Sequence record: NC_061443.1
Direction: 5' to 3' (one strand)
Length of the DNA: 64,000 nt
Position 1 is the stretch's first letter; each line of letters begins with the position of its first letter. Below, one piece after another: positions 5,660 through 42,272 of the stretch. Position numbers and translations under genes: made by a program. Below the pieces are notes generated by a model, which was not told where the DNA came from, did no database searches, and saw only the letters and a program-made list of their open reading frames with translations.

Positions 5660-6710
5660 TGATACGCGCAATCTGTCCCGCATCGGTAAAATGATTGACG
5701 CTGCCCTTGACGTAAAGAACCAAGAGAAGCGTTGGCCGAAGAAGCGCGTCAGTCCTTCGATGTTTCCTATCTGCCCGATTCAAGAGGCAGCCAAACTGAT
5801 CTACCAGAAGCATAATAACTGCATGACAGGTGAGTCTGGCACCTTGCTGAACATCTTCGCTAAGGCGGGGACTGGAATGCACGAATCATTGCAGAACGCT
5901 CTGGGACATAGTGGCCAGATGGTTGGTCACTGGAAATGTACGAACGATAAATGCGTTGAGTACCCAAAGACCAAAGGCAAGACTGTCGATGGTGAGTACG
6001 TCAAAGGCAAATACACGCGAACTCGAAGCACGAACAATCGCTGTCCATCGTGCGACAAGCCCATGGCTTATGCAGAACTTAAAGTCCTGTACAAGTCATT
6101 AAAGGGATACGTCGATGGACTGATTGATAATCTGGACGGTACGTACAGCCTGATAGATTTGAAATCGACTATGGTGACCAAAGCTGCTGACGGTTCTTTC
6201 TTCGTTAAGTATCACCGCTTCCAGATTGCGACATACGCATACCTGCTGAAAAAGCGTTACGGCTATAACATCGTAGACTACACCCTGGTCTATGTGCCAC
6301 GCGACAACCCTAAAAAGTTTGTCGAGAAGACCTTTATCTTCGACGAGGCTGAGTCTAAGCGCGCCAAAGACTTTATGATGGAACAAATACGCGCATGGGA
6401 TGCTGCGGTAAAATCGGTGCGCACAGGCGACTTGCTGCCCGCTATCAAGCGGAAGCCGTGCAAGAGTGCCGAGTATTATTGGGACGAGTTCCACGGATAT
6501 GACACATGCCCTTTTGTTGACTATTGCTTTATTCAATCACACATGATTGACTTCATGAAGAAGTTGGAGCAGCGAATCATGGCCAACCCCGAACTGACTT
6601 ATATGGAAATCGTAAGTACAGGGCGGAAAACTCAACAACAAGGTCTGCTGCCGGACAAGAAGTCCAAGACTGGACGTCCGAAGCATATCGTAAAAACATT
6701 TGAGCTATGA
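5625..6710 (+). CDS. Cas4/RecB-family PD-(D/E)xK exonuclease with Fe-S-type Cys set and inserted Zn finger
   Basis: SPSMFPICP, GTGMH, GYVDGLID, IDLKST, QIATYAYL, and C-terminal C...CPFVDYC; extra CTNDKC/CPSC. Confidence 0.8.
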   Translation: MRTLANIPARVNDTRNLSRIGKMIDAALDVKNQEKRWPKKRVSPSMFPICPIQEAAKLIYQKHNNCMTGESGTLLNIFAKAGTGMHESLQNALGHSGQMVGHWKCTNDKCVEYPKTKGKTVDGEYVKGKYTRTRSTNNRCPSCDKPMAYAELKVLYKSLKGYVDGLIDNLDGTYSLIDLKSTMVTKAADGSFFVKYHRFQIATYAYLLKKRYGYNIVDYTLVYVPRDNPKKFVEKTFIFDEAESKRAKDFMMEQIRAWDAAVKSVRTGDLLPAIKRKPCKSAEYYWDEFHGYDTCPFVDYCFIQSHMIDFMKKLEQRIMANPELTYMEIVSTGRKTQQQGLLPDKKSKTGRPKHIVKTFEL

Positions 6711-9597: not shown

Positions 9598-10820
9598 TCA
9601 TGATGAACAATCTCGTTGGTACTGCTGTAGCTTTAGATCATTGTCGCTTCTACGTGGAGAACATGGTCAACCTTCAATTCGAGCAACCGCTGGCATCCAT
9701 TCCGCCAGAGCCTCCATACAACGAACCGATTAACTCTCGTGTTCTGCACTCTTTGATTGACGGCATTCAGACCGCGTTCGACAATGCAATCAGCCGCACT
9801 GATCTGCAATTCCCTTACGCACCGATTCTATACCGCTTTCGTTCTATTTACGGCGTGTACTGTAATCAGTATCTGGATGAGGCAACAATCAAACGTGCTA
9901 AGTCCGAACGTCCTGCGGGCTTCCCTGCTTCTCAGTCTGTTCCTGTTCGCGTCGAAAACGAACACGACAAAGAGTTCGCTGTACGTTTCCTCAGGCATAC
10001 TGCCGATCAAGTCAGCGCGTTCCTGTACATGGTTAGTATAGACCAGTACGCTCGTGAGCAAACAGACTGCTGGTTGCCTGCACCTCCCGATGCGTTTGAT
10101 TTGCCAAAAGCTATTTTGCTTGTGGGTAACGGTGTGGCGTACACCTCCGTGCACAACGAGCTGGTCAATCACTTGATGGAAGCGATGTTGAAAACGTACA
10201 GTGACACGCTGGACATTCATGTATCGCTGCGCGACTACGGTGTGTCTGTGTTGTTCCCGCTGGTGGCTGAATGCCGCAACGTGCTATACGCTGCATGGCC
10301 TATTCCCTCACGTCAGCCTCAGTTCAAGGATAGTGGTGAACACGTAACGTTTGATGATCTGCCTGTTGATGACGACGAGGAAGAGTTCGAGCCGATCCCA
10401 CCAATGGGACCTACGTTCGAGAATCAAGCTGAGTGGGTAACTACCGCAACTGAGATTGCGCAGTCATTCAATCTGCAAGCGTTTGCCGATGATGGAGATT
10501 CCTCTTTCGTACTCAAACCTGTATTGTATAAAAGCGGTGATGACTTCTTGTTCTGGTCAGAGGAGCAGATAACAGGAAAAGTTATCCTTGATATCGCGAT
10601 CAGTCCAATTATAGGTCAAGCCTATGAAGACATGGACGTTAAACTTCGTAGTGTTGGTAAAACACTTAGGGAGTATGCTGAAAAGCATAGTTGTCATATC
10701 ATCTCTCGTTACATCGAACAAGAAGATCAAATCATCGGTGCGTTATTCCGAGTTCGTCGTAACATCGACTTCCCTAATTCGCCGCTCGAAGTGACTACCC
10801 ACGTGGAGATAGCACTATGA
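9594..10820 (+). CDS. hypothetical protein; C-terminal domain paralogous to the next gene
   Basis: long ORF, GTGA overlap; shared TFE.Q..W ... KV.LDI.I ... GAL.RV.RN.DFP. Confidence 0.8.
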   Translation: MIMMNNLVGTAVALDHCRFYVENMVNLQFEQPLASIPPEPPYNEPINSRVLHSLIDGIQTAFDNAISRTDLQFPYAPILYRFRSIYGVYCNQYLDEATIKRAKSERPAGFPASQSVPVRVENEHDKEFAVRFLRHTADQVSAFLYMVSIDQYAREQTDCWLPAPPDAFDLPKAILLVGNGVAYTSVHNELVNHLMEAMLKTYSDTLDIHVSLRDYGVSVLFPLVAECRNVLYAAWPIPSRQPQFKDSGEHVTFDDLPVDDDEEEFEPIPPMGPTFENQAEWVTTATEIAQSFNLQAFADDGDSSFVLKPVLYKSGDDFLFWSEEQITGKVILDIAISPIIGQAYEDMDVKLRSVGKTLREYAEKHSCHIISRYIEQEDQIIGALFRVRRNIDFPNSPLEVTTHVEIAL

Positions 10821-11341
10821 CAGATCAAGTAATCACATTTGAAGACCAGCAGAGCTGGGAAGACTTCGGCAGTGCTGTCTACGAAGAATTTCGTTTGAAC
10901 ACTATGACCGGCAGTAGTCTCGCTATGCAGGTTCCAGAAGTCGGTCCGAACGAAGGTGTTAAACATGCGTTGACCTACCACACGTTGACGCAATGGTCTG
11001 AAAAAGTTGTGCTGGACATTTTGATCAACGAAGTAGCGCTGGCCGAAGGTGAGTCACGCAACTACGATGACGCTACTCTGGATGCTGCCGTACGCAAAGT
11101 CGTAGCGCTGTATCAGGCACGAGCGCGTGATCTCAAGTGTCACATTACAGGCCAGTTCCTGACAGAAGAAAACAATGTGGTTGGTGCGTTGCTGCGCGTC
11201 TATCGCAATGAAGACTTCCCATGTACTGGTCATCCTGAACTGCTGTATGGAAAACCAATAGGTATGTATCACTGCGATAAGTGTCGTGAGATGCAGGTCG
11301 CTGGTACATTCCATCTGCCGCTGGAGAACGACAATGGTTAA
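10817..11341 (+). CDS. hypothetical protein with C-terminal Zn ribbon
   Basis: FPCTGH...HCDKC; GGAG RBS. Confidence 0.8.
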   Translation: MTDQVITFEDQQSWEDFGSAVYEEFRLNTMTGSSLAMQVPEVGPNEGVKHALTYHTLTQWSEKVVLDILINEVALAEGESRNYDDATLDAAVRKVVALYQARARDLKCHITGQFLTEENNVVGALLRVYRNEDFPCTGHPELLYGKPIGMYHCDKCREMQVAGTFHLPLENDNG

Positions 11342-11801
11342 AGGTGGGTTATGGCGTGTCTTCCCTGACTATGACTCGGAAGAGATGCTGATGAAGCTGG
11401 GCGCTGCTATCGGTATTGAGCACGATGATGACGAAGGCCCAGGCGAGTTGCACGTTACTCTGGCTTACGATGACTCTAATCCAGACGTCAAAGCGGAGCA
11501 GAACGATGCTGGCGAGTTCTTCGCAATCGTCAACGGAGCTGAACTGTTTGGTGAAGGGCAGGATAAGATTCTGGTACTCGTACTTGACTCTCCTGACCTG
11601 ATTGCAGAGCATGATCGCATTCACGCCTGTGGTGCCGCTAAGTTCTCATTCAAGCCGTACCGTCCGCACGTTACGCTATTGAAGCAAGCCAAAGACAGTC
11701 AGGTTGAACATCTGAATCAGATCATTCAACACCCAGGCCGTCCTCCAATCACTCTGCGTTTCATCGAAGAAGATCGCAAGGTACTGGAGAAGCGTAACTA
11801 A
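11334..11801 (+). CDS. 2H phosphoesterase, T4 gp57B/Acb1-like anti-CBASS nuclease candidate
   Basis: two HxT motifs (LHVTLAY, PHVTLL); LVLVLDSPDLIAEH...YRPHVTL parallels T4 57B [14 protein letters not shown]...YTPHITL (recalled sequence). Confidence 0.75.
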   Translation: MVKGGLWRVFPDYDSEEMLMKLGAAIGIEHDDDEGPGELHVTLAYDDSNPDVKAEQNDAGEFFAIVNGAELFGEGQDKILVLVLDSPDLIAEHDRIHACGAAKFSFKPYRPHVTLLKQAKDSQVEHLNQIIQHPGRPPITLRFIEEDRKVLEKRN

Positions 11802-11852
11802 ATCCTAGCGGTGGCCATGTGCTGCCGCTTTTGTCATTCTGGAGATATTTCT

Positions 11853-13314: not shown

Positions 13315-14583
13315 ATGGCACGTGGATTTGGTGACATTCAGGACAACAGCAAACGTGATAGTCTGCGTGAGTCCGAAATCTTTGAAATCTTCCCGCTCTC
13401 AAAGAAAGCAAACGGCAACTGGGTATCAATCCGCCTGTTAGATCTCGACCTGCTTCCTATCAAGAAGCACTGGATCAAGATCATGGGCGGCAAAGACAAA
13501 GATAAAGAAATCAAAATCCCGCGCATGTGCGTCAGCTTCGATCCGGACAATCAGAACAAACCTCTGAACGGTATGAAGTGTCCGTACTGCGGTATTGCAC
13601 ATGGCAACGACGAATCCGGTGCGCCCGCGCAGTACGACTACAAGTGGTATGCGCAAGCGATCATCCGTGACGAGCAAGCCGCCGCGCCACGTAAAATGCC
13701 GAAGCTCACTAAGAAAGAGCAGAAATCCGGCAAGAAAGAAATGGGTAGCGAATCATGGACCCCGGTCATGTGTATTCCGCTGTCTAACTCTCTGGCGCAG
13801 AAAATCAAAGACCTGGGTGAGCGCAACATTCACACGGTCAAAGATAAGAAGTCTGGCAAGAAGTCTAAGCAGGCATTCCAGGTCAACCATCCGAAGTACG
13901 GTTGTGATATCGAAATCAAATACAACCCGAAAAAATCTCCTGCCGAGCGTTACACGCTTGAGCGCGGTGACCCATCTCCACTGACCGGTGACGAGAAAGA
14001 ATATCTGACCTGGGACTTCGACAACTGGAACGAAATCTACGACATGCTCGGCCGTCTGAATGAAGAAGCTGCAATGGCTGACTTCAAGAAGATGGACGTT
14101 ATCGGCGTTAACACCAATGATTCTGACGATGGTGATGACGAAGATGAAGACGACGACATGGCGCTGGGTCGTGGCAAGAAGGGTGCTAAAGGCGATAAGA
14201 AAAAACGCCGCAGCGACGATGACGATGACGACGAAGATGAAGACGAAGATGATCGTCCGTCCAAGAAGTCTAAAAAGTCCAAGCCGACCAAGTCGCGCAA
14301 AATGCTGGACGATGATGAAGACGACGAAGATGATGAAGATGAAGACGAAGATGATCGTCCATCTAAAAAATCCAAGAAGTCTGCTAAGTCCAGCAAGTCT
14401 TCTAAGTCGTCCAAGAAGTCTAAGAAGTCAGATGATGACGACGAAGACGAAGACGACAAGCCTGCCAAGAAGAAAAAGAAATCTTCTGACAAGGTGAAAT
14501 CATCCGATAAGAAGAAAAAGAAAAAGTCTTCTGATGACGATGACGACGACAAGCCAGCGAAGAAGAAAAAGAAGAAAAAGTAA
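13315..14583 (+). CDS. gp32-like single-stranded DNA-binding protein with long charged tail
   Basis: N-terminal G.W..IRLL...H...C....CPYC pattern typical of T4 gp32-like SSBs; located directly upstream of recA; D/E and K blocks in the C-terminal third. Confidence 0.65.
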   Translation: MARGFGDIQDNSKRDSLRESEIFEIFPLSKKANGNWVSIRLLDLDLLPIKKHWIKIMGGKDKDKEIKIPRMCVSFDPDNQNKPLNGMKCPYCGIAHGNDESGAPAQYDYKWYAQAIIRDEQAAAPRKMPKLTKKEQKSGKKEMGSESWTPVMCIPLSNSLAQKIKDLGERNIHTVKDKKSGKKSKQAFQVNHPKYGCDIEIKYNPKKSPAERYTLERGDPSPLTGDEKEYLTWDFDNWNEIYDMLGRLNEEAAMADFKKMDVIGVNTNDSDDGDDEDEDDDMALGRGKKGAKGDKKKRRSDDDDDDEDEDEDDRPSKKSKKSKPTKSRKMLDDDEDDEDDEDEDEDDRPSKKSKKSAKSSKSSKSSKKSKKSDDDDEDEDDKPAKKKKKSSDKVKSSDKKKKKKSSDDDDDDKPAKKKKKKK

Positions 14584-31736: not shown

Positions 31737-32036
31737 ATGGTCACCCAACAACAACTAACCGAGTTCGCTCTGCTGCCAACACTGCATCGTAAAGTTGTAC
31801 TGCGTAGTATGCAGGTTGAAATGTTGGGTGCCTTGCCTGAGCTTACCGACATTGTGCGTGAAATGCTTTATCGTGCGATTGTCGTGGATGTGGCTCAGGC
31901 TGAACTGGCACTCTTAGCCGCCCGTCAAATGTGTGACAACAAAGATGTCCGCAAAGACATTGATGACCTTCTGCAATTTGCTGCGCGTCTGCATGACGTT
32001 GCAACTGATAACTTTATTACTGGAGATTTACTATGA
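31737..32036 (+). CDS. hypothetical protein
   Basis: AAGGA RBS. Confidence 0.75.
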   Translation: MVTQQQLTEFALLPTLHRKVVLRSMQVEMLGALPELTDIVREMLYRAIVVDVAQAELALLAARQMCDNKDVRKDIDDLLQFAARLHDVATDNFITGDLL

Positions 32037-33097
32037 ACAAGACTGTTGGCCTGATGATTGATGAAGACGTAATGAACTGGCTGGACATGCTCATGCCTCA
32101 CGAACTGCGCCGCGTTATCGACGCTCTGAATAACATCGTGTACGCTCGTCGTCAGGAACTTACTGTCGAACGTCTGACCGAAGATGAAGACGTAGGCGCC
32201 CTGTCTCATAAAGAGCTGGAGATCATTCTACGTCACGCTTCCCCTAAGCATGAGTACGACACGTCCGTTCTGTCTAATGAGCAACTGCTCCGCTTGGCTA
32301 TTGACGCGCAATCCATCATCCAGTACACACTGCCGTGTCACTGTTCGCCTATCATGGTCAAACGTGCTTTTGCTAACGGTCTTACGTGCTCCCTGCTGGG
32401 TAGCTTCTCGAATCGTGCTGATATCATCATGGCTGTTCATCATTGGGAGTACGGCCTATCTAACATCTCACTTGATTCTATTACCGATAGCGATGCGCGT
32501 CCTGATGAACAGGGCCTGTACCTGTGCTATGACGAACACAAACAGATTCGCTATGGTCGTCTATTCAAGAATGCAAACGAAGGCTGGACCTTCCATGAAT
32601 CGTATTCGAATGGCGGCTCGACTTCATGGCTCGAAGCTGCGGAAGGTAAAGCACTTGATGACGATGACCTGCCGATCTGCTTGCTGTCTAATTGGGTATT
32701 CGTAGCACCCGACCAGTCTCCGTCAATCATTCGCAAAGAGACAGATATCAAACGTCTGTCTGACACACAACGCATCTTCCTCTACCTGCGTAGCCTGAGT
32801 CCTCACGTTAAGGCTGAAATCGTTACTCACTTCGACGGTGTGCTCGACAATCGCGTATTCACGTCTGTTGATCAGATTGGTCGTCTGACAGAAACTGATT
32901 GGCGCAATGCTGCTATCGCAATCGGTGAAGAAGAACGTGGTCAAGAAGGTAAACACTACTGGGATGATCGCAGTGCTTGGGCCTGTTTCGTCGCTGTGCT
33001 CAACTCTCTGTGTTATGACATGGAAACACGCGACTTCCAACCTCAGTACGAGTATCAGGCTAACGACGACACTATGGAAGAAGATAACAATGGCTAA
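32033..33097 (+). CDS. hypothetical protein with HeH-like module near the N-terminus
   Basis: GGAG RBS; LSHKELEIILRH...LSNEQLLRLAIDAQ. Confidence 0.8.
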   Translation: MNKTVGLMIDEDVMNWLDMLMPHELRRVIDALNNIVYARRQELTVERLTEDEDVGALSHKELEIILRHASPKHEYDTSVLSNEQLLRLAIDAQSIIQYTLPCHCSPIMVKRAFANGLTCSLLGSFSNRADIIMAVHHWEYGLSNISLDSITDSDARPDEQGLYLCYDEHKQIRYGRLFKNANEGWTFHESYSNGGSTSWLEAAEGKALDDDDLPICLLSNWVFVAPDQSPSIIRKETDIKRLSDTQRIFLYLRSLSPHVKAEIVTHFDGVLDNRVFTSVDQIGRLTETDWRNAAIAIGEEERGQEGKHYWDDRSAWACFVAVLNSLCYDMETRDFQPQYEYQANDDTMEEDNNG

Positions 33098-33623
33098 ATC
33101 ACTTGGCGTATACATGACTTACATTCTGCGCCACAAGCCGCAGGATATCGGAATTGCAATGGACACTCAAGGCTGGGTGTCTGTTCTGGACTTTTTGCAG
33201 AAAGCGAAGTATGCGAAACAGGTCACGCTCGAAATGCTGATTGCAGAAGTTGAGGCAGACGAGAAAGGCCGCTTCGAGTTCAACTCAAACAAGTCCAAGA
33301 TTCGTTGTGTTCAAGGCCACTCGGTAGAGAACGTCATCCTGAACCTTGAGCCGTTCACAGAACTTGAACCTCTGTATCACGGCACGGCAGAAAAGAACGT
33401 TGCTTCGATCATGCACGAAGGTATCACGAAACGCCGACGCAAACATGTTCACATTAGTCGTGAGCAAGAAACTGCCGAGAACGTTGGGCGCCGTCACGGT
33501 CTGCCTGTTGTGTTCGAGATCGACACATTGGCGATGATCACTCACGGCTACAAGTTCTACCGTGCAGAGAACGGTGTGATCTTAACGGACCACGTACCTT
33601 CCAGATACATCAAGCTGGTGTGA
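33090..33623 (+). CDS. kptA: RNA 2'-phosphotransferase, Tpt1/KptA family
   Basis: YILRH, MD..GWV, KGRFE, IRCVQGHS, LYHGT, I..EG....R.HVH, G.KFY.AENGV.L. Confidence 0.92.
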   Translation: MAKSLGVYMTYILRHKPQDIGIAMDTQGWVSVLDFLQKAKYAKQVTLEMLIAEVEADEKGRFEFNSNKSKIRCVQGHSVENVILNLEPFTELEPLYHGTAEKNVASIMHEGITKRRRKHVHISREQETAENVGRRHGLPVVFEIDTLAMITHGYKFYRAENGVILTDHVPSRYIKLV

Positions 33624-34093: not shown

Positions 34094-35671
34094 ATGAAAA
34101 AGATTAAACACACTTTCCGTCTGACCGACTTGGTACACATCGCCAAACTTCCTGCAGGTATGTCCAAATTCCATGAAGGTTCGGATGCGATTGTTGTCGG
34201 CCGCAACGAAGATAGTGACCAGTATACCCTGCATGTTAAACATGTCGGTGAGCTTTCTTGGTATGAAGGTAAATCGTTGACGTTGATCAGCCATAACAAT
34301 GGCGAACTGCTTGACCAGTGGGAAGCGGGCGACTACGGCCGTGACAAGAAAAAGAAACGCAAGATCCCAAAAGAGCTGCGTAACTTCACGGCTATCCTGC
34401 CTGTTACCTGCAACGCCGATTGTTCGTTCTGCCCTGAGAAAGAAATGGAGCAGAAAGCCACTCAACAAGAGTGGCAAGACAATCTGATCTACAGCATCAA
34501 ACGTATGACGCTGAAAACCCGATTCGACCACATATCAATCTCAGGTGGCGAGCCTTCGTTGCGTTCGAAGTTCTTGTTCGAGACTATCGACCGCATTCAG
34601 AAAGAAACGCCAATCAAGAAAGTCGGCCTGACTTCTAACGGCTTCTTCCTTGAAAAGCAAAACAGCACGTTCGACTTCTTAGATCGCAACACTACGCCTG
34701 AGATGACTAGCAAGCTGTCGCATCTGAATATCAGTATGCACTCGTTTATGCGTGAACGTGCGAACAAGATCATGGGCGTGAACTACAAACAGACGCTGGA
34801 AGATTTGGTTCGTTTCCGTCGCCAGCTGGGTCGTGATGTTAGCTTTCACATCAATTTTGTGATCAACGACAAGACTGGCTCTATTACGGAAGAGTTCAAA
34901 ATGGCCGCTAACTTCATGCGAGCCAATCCGTTTATCGACGTTGTGTTCCGTGTTGACTACAACGATGTTGAACTGTCGAAAGCGTTGCGTGAATACGCTA
35001 TGGAATATGAAGCGTGGCAGGAAGCAAGCCGTATCGCAATCGCAACTCGCAAGAAATGCAAAGTGAAAGAGCCTAAAGCTCCGCACATCGTTCAGAAGTT
35101 TGACCGCTACTTCGGTGGCCAGAACCTTGCAGATGTTGAAAGCGCTTGGACTACAGGCTGCCCGTCATGTTTCACCCATGCGTCGAACCCTGTCAATAAC
35201 AGTCGCGCATATTTGAAAGCGTCCTCGTATGAACCGAACGAAGACGAAGAAGAATACACTGAGCTGGTGTATCACATGGACGGCACACTGTACTGGGATT
35301 GGACTCGTAATGACCCAGTGCCTGCGCCGCGTAGCAAGCGTTTTGACTTCGACATGAAAGACGAAGAAGATACGCAGCCTAAGAGCAAGAGCAAGAACAA
35401 AAAGACTGAACAAGATAAGGCGTGGGAACATGGTTCCGTAGCCGAGGCGATTAACGCCAATCGCTGCTCGTTCGGTCCTGCGGCACCTCATCATTGCTCT
35501 TACGATTCTACTGGTACTGCCGTGGCTCCGCAGACAGTCAAGCCGCAGCCTAAGACTGTTAAGGCGAAAACAGTCAAACCTTCTAAGAAAGTGAGCAAAG
35601 GTAAAGTTTCAACCACACCTGGCGGTTCCCCTGGCGTGTGTGGTTACGGTCATAGTCGTTGTGGTTACTAA
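34094..35671 (+). CDS. radical SAM protein with N-terminal extra domain and Cys/Gly-rich C-terminal tail
   Basis: CNADCSFC (CxxxCxxC) at 34409; ISGGEPSL; LTSNG; NISMH; GAGGA RBS favours ATG 34094. Confidence 0.85.
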   Translation: MKKIKHTFRLTDLVHIAKLPAGMSKFHEGSDAIVVGRNEDSDQYTLHVKHVGELSWYEGKSLTLISHNNGELLDQWEAGDYGRDKKKKRKIPKELRNFTAILPVTCNADCSFCPEKEMEQKATQQEWQDNLIYSIKRMTLKTRFDHISISGGEPSLRSKFLFETIDRIQKETPIKKVGLTSNGFFLEKQNSTFDFLDRNTTPEMTSKLSHLNISMHSFMRERANKIMGVNYKQTLEDLVRFRRQLGRDVSFHINFVINDKTGSITEEFKMAANFMRANPFIDVVFRVDYNDVELSKALREYAMEYEAWQEASRIAIATRKKCKVKEPKAPHIVQKFDRYFGGQNLADVESAWTTGCPSCFTHASNPVNNSRAYLKASSYEPNEDEEEYTELVYHMDGTLYWDWTRNDPVPAPRSKRFDFDMKDEEDTQPKSKSKNKKTEQDKAWEHGSVAEAINANRCSFGPAAPHHCSYDSTGTAVAPQTVKPQPKTVKAKTVKPSKKVSKGKVSTTPGGSPGVCGYGHSRCGY

Positions 35672-41291: not shown

Positions 41292-42272
41292 ATGCGATTC
41301 GGATTCGCCTGCAAACTGATTGAACCGAACGGTAAGCAGCCCTACACAAATAAGAGCCTGAGCTATAAGCACTTCTCTGCGTTGTCTGCGCCTGACCAGC
41401 ACGGTAAACTCTTGGACGTTGTTACGCACAATCTGACTTCATTGCTCAACATGATAAAGCACGTTGGCAGACTGCGTACCGATATGCGTATGTTCCGAAT
41501 CACAAGTGAGTTGCTTCCACTGTATACTCACCCTAAGGTGTTTCACATGTACCTACGCCACGATATCGCGGCACTGGTTGAATCGTTACTTGCCTTATGT
41601 GGTGCAGAGGCTCGACGACGTGATGTGCGACTTTCGTTTCACCCAGGACAATTCACGGTGCTCGCATCTGATCGACCTGACGTTGTTCAGAACTCGATTG
41701 CCGAACTTGAGTACCATGCGTACTGCGCCTATCACATGGGATATGGCAGACGCTTTCAAGACTTCAAGATCAACATTCACCTGAGTGGTAGACTCGGTGC
41801 TACGGGATTTAGAACAGCCTTTAGCAAACTCTCTGACCGCTGCCGTTTGATGCTGACCGTGGAGAATGATGAAATCACTTCGAGCGTCGAGGACTGCTTA
41901 ACGTTATCCGACATATGCCCTATAGTGTTGGACATTCATCACCACTGGGTAATGACTAACGAATACATACGACCAGAAGATGATCGTGTCCAGAGAGTTA
42001 TAGACTCTTGGAGAGGCGTTCGACCTGTCGCGCATTACTCTGTGTCTCGACCTGAGTTCGTTAAGTCTCGTGGACTGCCTGATCAAAACAAGCTGTCTGC
42101 TAATCGTATGCAGTTACGAGCACACTCTGATTACTATCACAATGAAGACGTAAACGAGTGGGCGCTTTCGTTCACTGCTTTTGACCTAATGTGCGAGTCA
42201 AAAGCGAAGAATCTAGCTAGATCGAAATTGGCATGTTTTAGCCTCAACTCTGCAAATAACTGGACAAAATAA
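41292..42272 (+). CDS. uvsE: UV damage endonuclease UvsE/UvdE
   Basis: RFGFAC, MFRITSELLP, RLSFHPGQFTVL.S, INIH, LTVENDE, VLDIHHH, HSDY, DLMCESKAKNLA. Confidence 0.92.
   Translation: MRFGFACKLIEPNGKQPYTNKSLSYKHFSALSAPDQHGKLLDVVTHNLTSLLNMIKHVGRLRTDMRMFRITSELLPLYTHPKVFHMYLRHDIAALVESLLALCGAEARRRDVRLSFHPGQFTVLASDRPDVVQNSIAELEYHAYCAYHMGYGRRFQDFKINIHLSGRLGATGFRTAFSKLSDRCRLMLTVENDEITSSVEDCLTLSDICPIVLDIHHHWVMTNEYIRPEDDRVQRVIDSWRGVRPVAHYSVSRPEFVKSRGLPDQNKLSANRMQLRAHSDYYHNEDVNEWALSFTAFDLMCESKAKNLARSKLACFSLNSANNWTK

Follow-up and report, generated by a model that had tools for sequence, protein, structure and literature searches.

Gene gp240 of the Erwinia jumbo phage pEa_SNUABM_2 encodes a predicted Acb1-family 2H phosphodiesterase with departures at ligand-contact positions

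Profile searches and structure prediction support the assignment of gp240, a 155-residue protein of Erwinia phage pEa_SNUABM_2, to the Acb1 family, whose enzymes are used by phages to destroy bacterial cyclic-nucleotide alarm signals. An Acb1-type enzyme acting on cyclic oligonucleotide signals is the best overall explanation of the evidence from sequence, modelling and analogy with known family members, and we put its probability at roughly 0.6. Because gp240 carries Leu6 and Lys149 at two ligand-contact positions and has no Trp-bearing lid, its substrate range probably differs to some extent from that of T4 Acb1. The DNA analysed (the window, 64,000 nt) is 100 % identical to the genome of pEa_SNUABM_2 (NC_061443.1/MZ443786.1; 265,442 bp; Alexandravirus; host Erwinia amylovora), a match that bears out the original prediction of a jumbo phage; window coordinates are those of the NC_061443.1 record minus 186,000.

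The gp240 reading frame runs from an ATG to a TAA codon with no internal stops (Table 1). Its start is backed in three ways, by the GGAG element, by the overlap with the upstream gene gp239, and by the conservation of the N-terminus in homologs. The ATG overlaps the gp239 stop codon (ATGGTTAA), and this overlap suggests translational coupling. Pairwise dN/dS values of gp240 against four orthologs were 0.07–0.18, indicating a coding gene under purifying selection.

Table 1. Position of gp240 and associated features in the window
Feature	Position	Strand	Identifier, basis or remark
Upstream gene gp239 (174 aa, phrog_29033)	10817..11341	+	Stop overlaps gp240 start
Shine-Dalgarno-like GGAG	11323..11326	+	7 nt 5′ of ATG; direct sequence reading
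Predicted Acb1-family 2H phosphodiesterase gene (155 aa + stop)	11334..11801	+	gp240, MPK66_gp240, YP_010300681.1; ORF, Pfam, PHROG, AF2, Foldseek
Leu6 codon, at the position of base-stacking Tyr12 of T4 Acb1	11349..11351	+	Profile mapping
First catalytic motif, H40-V41-T42	11451..11459	+	Aligns with T4 H44/T46; His invariant, Thr in 137/138
Second catalytic motif, H112-V113-T114	11667..11675	+	Aligns with T4 H113/T115; His invariant, Thr/Ser in 138/138
Lys149 codon, at the position of adenine-N6-contacting Glu141 of T4 Acb1	11778..11780	+	Profile mapping
Terminator-like hairpin, 9 pairs (6 G-C), T-rich tail	11807..11839	+	6 nt past stop; consensus scan, pattern match only

Sequence comparisons gave concordant family assignments. 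Against Pfam Acb1 (PF23474; cut-off 27 bits) gp240 scored 46.6 bits (E=3.8e-12), against PHROG 755 it reached E=9e-31, and the single sequence searched against the sequences of the PDB matched the Acb1 of Erwinia phage FBB1 (7T26; E=5e-4). A profile built from 18 close homologs and searched against 1.84 billion representatives returned 586 hits; the alignment used below, A2, holds 138 sequences (130 single-domain hits, the query and seven close homologs), every one of which matches Pfam Acb1. The A2 profile matched the whole of 7T26 (E=1e-30) and also PDE-9 of the Burkholderia phage BCSR5 (9Q2G; 1.5e-25), as against only 3e-4 for plant CPDase. A Tequatrovirus 57B protein, whose gene lies in a T4-like neighbourhood with those for dNMP kinase, 57A and an internal head protein, aligned with gp240 by BLASTP (36 % identity over 80 aa, E=3e-7), and this pair reached a probability of 95 % in hhalign. 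PADLOC returned no hit on gp240, as is expected for a counter-defence gene.

The predicted structure points the same way. An AlphaFold2 model computed from the A2 alignment (pLDDT 92.6, pTM 0.87) has a high-confidence core and the compact fold of a 2H phosphoesterase. Foldseek searches of the PDB with this model ranked 9Q2Y and 9Q2G best, at TM 0.70–0.75 (9Q2Y 0.75/0.73), and matched FBB1 Acb1 (7T26) at 0.64/0.72, whilst plant CPDase, Usb1 and LigT reached about 0.5. An HMM and Foldseek comparison with Acb1 had been proposed as a check on the original prediction, and with the Pfam score given above and top PDB matches that are all Acb1-type (9Q2Y, 9Q2G and 7T26), the outcome was favourable. 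Amongst predicted structures in BFVD, the best matches were proteins that UniProt names ‘Anti-CBASS protein Acb1’, from phages JA29 (TM 0.87/0.90), fHe-Yen9-04, PaBG, RisingSun and pEt-SU. The family assignment is therefore not new, as UniProt already calls a 41 %-identical ortholog Acb1 and acb1 of Erwinia phages has already been published.

The two HxT motifs from which the prediction had started are present as described: gp240 contains exactly two, at residues 40–42 and 112–114, each reading H-V-T-L, and the 36-residue stretch that had been quoted is residues 80–115 of the protein. Such a pair is weak evidence by itself, because 8 of the 168 stop-to-stop ORFs of 100–250 aa in this window carry two HxT motifs, and the significance of the assignment rests on the profile scores (Pfam Acb1, PHROG 755) rather than on motif counts. 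With the pattern narrowed to H-[LIVM]-T-[LIVM], gp240 was the only one of the 168 ORFs to hold two copies. A stricter, five-residue motif was rejected as a significance test in favour of these simpler counts, as it missed the second gp240 site, where a Pro precedes His112.

Whilst the catalytic centre follows the family pattern, the predicted substrate pocket departs from it. In T4 Acb1 the catalytic tetrad is H44/T46/H113/T115, the stacking aromatics are Y12, W74, F107 and W147, E141 contacts adenine N6, and residues 145–152 form a C-terminal lid (Hobbs 2022, PMC9117128). We aligned both gp240 and the actual Tequatrovirus 57B protein, whose annotated numbering is the T4 numbering minus 1, to the A2 profile. 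T4 residues Y12, H44, T46, W74, F107, H113, T115 and E141 correspond to gp240 L6, H40, T42, F72, F106, H112, T114 and K149, respectively, and W147 lies past the end of gp240, the last residue of which (N155) is level with the Trp147 column. The tetrad H40/T42/H112/T114 is thus complete, and two of the four stacking aromatics, those of the core, are kept as F72 and F106, at columns that hold F 68, L 33 and W 19 (W74) and F 65 and Y 56 (F107) amongst the 138 sequences. Of the five ligand contacts defined for T4/FBB1 Acb1, two have changed, to Leu6 and Lys149. The Tyr12 column is aromatic in about 130 of 138 sequences (Y 115, F 15, L 4). The Glu141 column holds Glu in 73 of 138, which indicates that this residue is not essential to the family and instead marks the T4/FBB1 subtype. 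The orientation of Leu6, Trp7 and Lys149 relative to the pocket is read from the alignment and the strand register.

The ends of the protein are short. The C-terminal lid with Trp147 is absent, and the tail past the last strand bears no aromatic residue; a tail Trp of any kind occurs in 38 of the 138 relatives. Only five residues precede strand 1 in the model, which starts at residue 6, and six follow the last strand, so an N-terminal lid is also absent. The original prediction of a T4 gp57B-like Acb1 is supported as regards family homology, by profiles and by predicted fold; its proposal that the enzyme would destroy CBASS and perhaps cA3 signals is weaker in the details, since Tyr12 has become Leu6, Glu141 has become Lys149 and the Trp147 lid is missing.

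Comparison with characterized proteins and with orthologs places these departures in context. Like T4 Acb1 (gp57B, NP_049750.1) and FBB1 Acb1 (7T26/7T27), gp240 is a compact 2H protein of about 150 aa that shares their tetrad, carries aromatic residues where W74 and F107 stand, matches PF23474, and keeps the conserved stretch with Ser-x-x-Leu and His93 that separates the motifs. It differs from them in sequence (about 22 % of the aligned profile columns are identical), in Leu6, Lys149 and the want of a lid Trp, and in an extra conserved loop, H133–I139, where FBB1 Acb1 is gapped. BCSR5 PDE-9 (9Q2G/9Q2Y), the best structural match in the PDB and a member of the same Pfam family, likewise has no C-terminal Trp lid, but it is only 22 % identical and has a 15-residue N-terminal lid where gp240 has just five residues. 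The Acb1 of Dickeya phage vB_DsoM_JA29 (A0A384ZXI9) and its counterparts in Yoloswag and fHe-Yen9-02 are true orthologs, at about 41–50 % identity, which occupy the same syntenic slot and have the same lid-less ends. The orthologs of JA29 (Salmondvirus), Yoloswag and fHe-Yen9-02 keep the Tyr/Glu pair, whereas Leu at the Tyr12 position is combined with Lys at the Glu141 position in pEa_SNUABM_2, Alexandra, SNUABM_36, SNUABM_46 and Y3 (Sasquatchvirus). On the sequences compared, the Leu/Lys pair is specific to the Alexandravirus/Sasquatchvirus group, with the qualification that position 149 is Thr in one of 13 close clusters and so is not strictly fixed.

Catalytic activity, cyclic di- or trinucleotide substrates and protection of the phage are what we infer for gp240. 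The protein would be a compact, metal-independent 2H phosphodiesterase in which the two His-x-Thr motifs carry out acid–base catalysis on a 3′-5′ phosphodiester of a small cyclic oligonucleotide, as in T4 and FBB1 Acb1, opening the ring by way of a 2′,3′-cyclic phosphate intermediate. Removal of the second messenger would then leave a CBASS-type signalling defence of the host unable to switch on its effector. All ten Acb1 proteins assayed by Hobbs 2022 (PMC9117128) cleaved 3′3′-cGAMP and cAAA, and PDE-9 stripped of its lid retained 3′3′-cGAMP cleavage (Doherty 2025 preprint). Lid-less T4 Acb1, however, was inactive in the Panoptes read-out, and this counts against gp240 as an active Acb1. Two of the seven 2H structural groups assayed by Doherty et al. 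2025 cleaved nothing in the panel. The proteins tested by Hobbs 2022 and Doherty 2025, supplements included, contain none from the lid-less jumbo-phage subgroup.

What is reported of host defences also bears on the substrate. Of the 227 Erwinia phage genomes surveyed in a 2026 study, 61 carried acb1, and no other phage anti-defence gene was as common amongst them (PMC13480210). In the same work, DefenseFinder applied to 317 E. amylovora genomes found RM systems, type I-E CRISPR and Mok/Hok/Sok to be prevalent, listed CBASS_I only amongst the rarely found systems, and reported no type III CRISPR amongst the prevalent ones (PMC13480210). The rarity of CBASS in E. amylovora, taken together with the residue changes, means that the T4 substrate list is not simply transferable to gp240.

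The genomic position of the gene is stable. The order phrog_29033 gene, 2H gene, gene of about 100 aa, sigma-like factor, SSB and UvsX-like recombinase is identical in Alexandravirus, Salmondvirus, Yoloswagvirus and fHe-Yen9-02, with flanks detectably homologous in most comparisons, and a gp239 homolog lies in the matching overlapping position in JA29 and Yoloswag. The 2H gene is thus a core gene of a replication/transcription block in at least five genera rather than part of a variable anti-defence island, and this fixed position counts against an anti-CBASS role. T4-type 57B, by comparison, lies next to internal protein I. Context otherwise informs little on gp240, because its neighbours gp231–239 and gp241 match no Pfam family and only PHROGs of unknown function. 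The phrog_29033 protein could be a partner of the gp240 enzyme. The plus-strand genes at 9600–10820 and 10817–11341, both upstream of gp240, are paralogs that have a C-terminal domain in common (phrog_29033; BLASTP E=1.6e-13).

The strongest competitor to the Acb1-type reading, to which we give a modest chance, keeps the fold and the chemistry and changes the target. The lid-less enzymes with Leu6 and Lys149, those of Alexandravirus and Sasquatchvirus, would form an Acb1 subtype whose rebuilt base pocket has shifted from adenine-containing CBASS signals to a messenger that T4 Acb1 handles poorly or not at all; alternatively, they would deliberately spare one messenger. The new target may, for example, be a messenger with a carbonyl-bearing base (G or U) facing the Lys, or a narrower set that avoids decoys such as Panoptes. 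In favour of this proposal are the joint change of two ligand-contact positions in a single clade, against the Tyr/Glu of its sister genera, and the purifying selection acting on both the Tyr/Glu and the Leu/Lys states. T4 Acb1 depends on adenosine because of Glu141 and does not cleave cGG (PMC9117128); specificity is also set by the fold core and varies even inside one structural group (Doherty 2025 preprint). Against it stand the Thr found at position 149 in one close cluster, the presence of Glu in only about half of the family at the Glu141 column, and the fact that the roles given to the side chains derive from aligned sequences, not from coordinates. If the proposal were true, gp240 would represent the natural re-targeting of an anti-signalling enzyme that a jumbo-phage lineage retains amongst its core genes.

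A housekeeping role in RNA metabolism is less probable again. Here gp240 would be a 2′,3′-cyclic phosphodiesterase of the LigT/ThpR kind that trims RNA ends bearing cyclic phosphates, possibly feeding a repair pathway that ends with the phage Tpt1/KptA. ThpR and LigT (TIGR02258; 5LDI, 4QAK) are, like gp240, members of the 2H superfamily with two HxT motifs, and gp240 just passes the Pfam 2_5_RNA_ligase2 model (30.6 bits, cut-off 27). It fails LigT_PEase (19.4 bits, cut-off 23.3) and the NCBIfam ThpR equivalog TIGR02258 (24.1 bits, cut-off 65.7); it is also about 20–30 residues shorter than these proteins, and the LigT structures 5LDI, 5LDM and 4QAK match its model at TM 0.45–0.51, ranking 15th or lower, which is about 0.5 as against 0.72–0.90 for Acb1-type proteins. 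The genome does hold a strong Tpt1/KptA homolog (150 bits) 21 kb downstream, gp240 is a conserved core gene of a nucleic-acid-metabolism block, and the authors of the phage Y3 annotation named its ortholog ‘putative cyclic phosphodiesterase’. However, the genome carries no annotated RNA ligase or polynucleotide kinase, the sole ‘RNA ligase’ label being that of gp240 itself, the window has no tRNA genes, and the Tpt1 and 2H genes do not co-distribute: Tpt1 was found in 98 phage records, which include Ea35-70-like phages and no T4-like phages, whereas a T4-type Acb1 relative gave 1,497 hits, mainly in T4-like phages. A link between Tpt1 and gp240 in RNA repair was accordingly rejected, for want of an annotated ligase or kinase in the genome and of co-distribution.

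The Tpt1/KptA RNA 2′-phosphotransferase gene (33090–33623, plus strand; Pfam 150 bits) begins within the end of a 354-aa gene (32033–33097) for which we found no Pfam, PHROG or PDB relative, and it is followed, after one 133-aa gene, by a 525-aa radical-SAM protein (34094–35671). The phage records with Tpt1 are mostly those of Erwinia, Dickeya and Klebsiella jumbo phages, together with Clostridioides phages.

That gp240 is a catalytically dead or purely structural 2H remnant is very improbable: some distant homologs, in CBB and pEa_SNUABM_47, carry structural-protein annotations and the portal protein of cyanophage Pam3 (8HDS) includes a fused 2H domain, but gp240 retains the two His and the two Thr of its motifs, at positions that are invariant or nearly so, the dN/dS values are low and the core is modelled with high confidence. 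The Pam3 portal is itself worth recording, as the C-terminal domain of 8HDS chain A (residues ~482–613) matches the Acb1-family profile at E=2.8e-12 and has both HxT-type motifs. Some Acb1-like domains may travel in the virion.

As well as supporting an Acb1-type enzyme, the analysis corrects the annotation of gp240, from ‘RNA ligase’ to Acb1-family 2H phosphodiesterase. The product is labelled ‘RNA ligase’ in RefSeq, after PHROG 755, and hypothetical in GenBank. We consider ‘RNA ligase’ a naming artefact, because the gene 57B homologs of T4-like phages bear the same PHROG 755 label. Its use for gene 57B (Acb1) homologs of many T4-like phages constitutes a systematic error that affects hundreds of records. 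On this assignment a whole lineage of jumbo phages, from Erwinia, Dickeya and Yersinia, carries an Acb1-family enzyme as a core gene in a syntenic position. Both the family with its mechanism and its occurrence in Erwinia phages are on record in the literature, and no new question is opened in those respects; the natural subtype pair, Tyr/Glu and Leu/Lys, could inform how specificity is set in the fold.

Other genes of the window also carry labels or features of note. The plus-strand gene at 5691–6710, which RefSeq calls ‘CRISPR/Cas system associated’, encodes a PD-(D/E)XK nuclease (Pfam PDDEXK_1, 34 bits; PHROG 1706); its RefSeq name repeats that of the PHROG and does not constitute evidence of a CRISPR link, and in JA29 a counterpart of this nuclease likewise lies upstream of the 2H block. 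The annotated SSB (13315–14583, plus strand) has a tail of about 150 residues in which Asp/Glu runs alternate with Lys/Ser, arranged as near-repeats in which each acidic run precedes a Lys/Ser-rich one. Lastly, the plus-strand gene at 41292–42272, annotated only as ‘endonuclease’, encodes a homolog of the UV-damage endonuclease UvdE (Pfam 148 bits).
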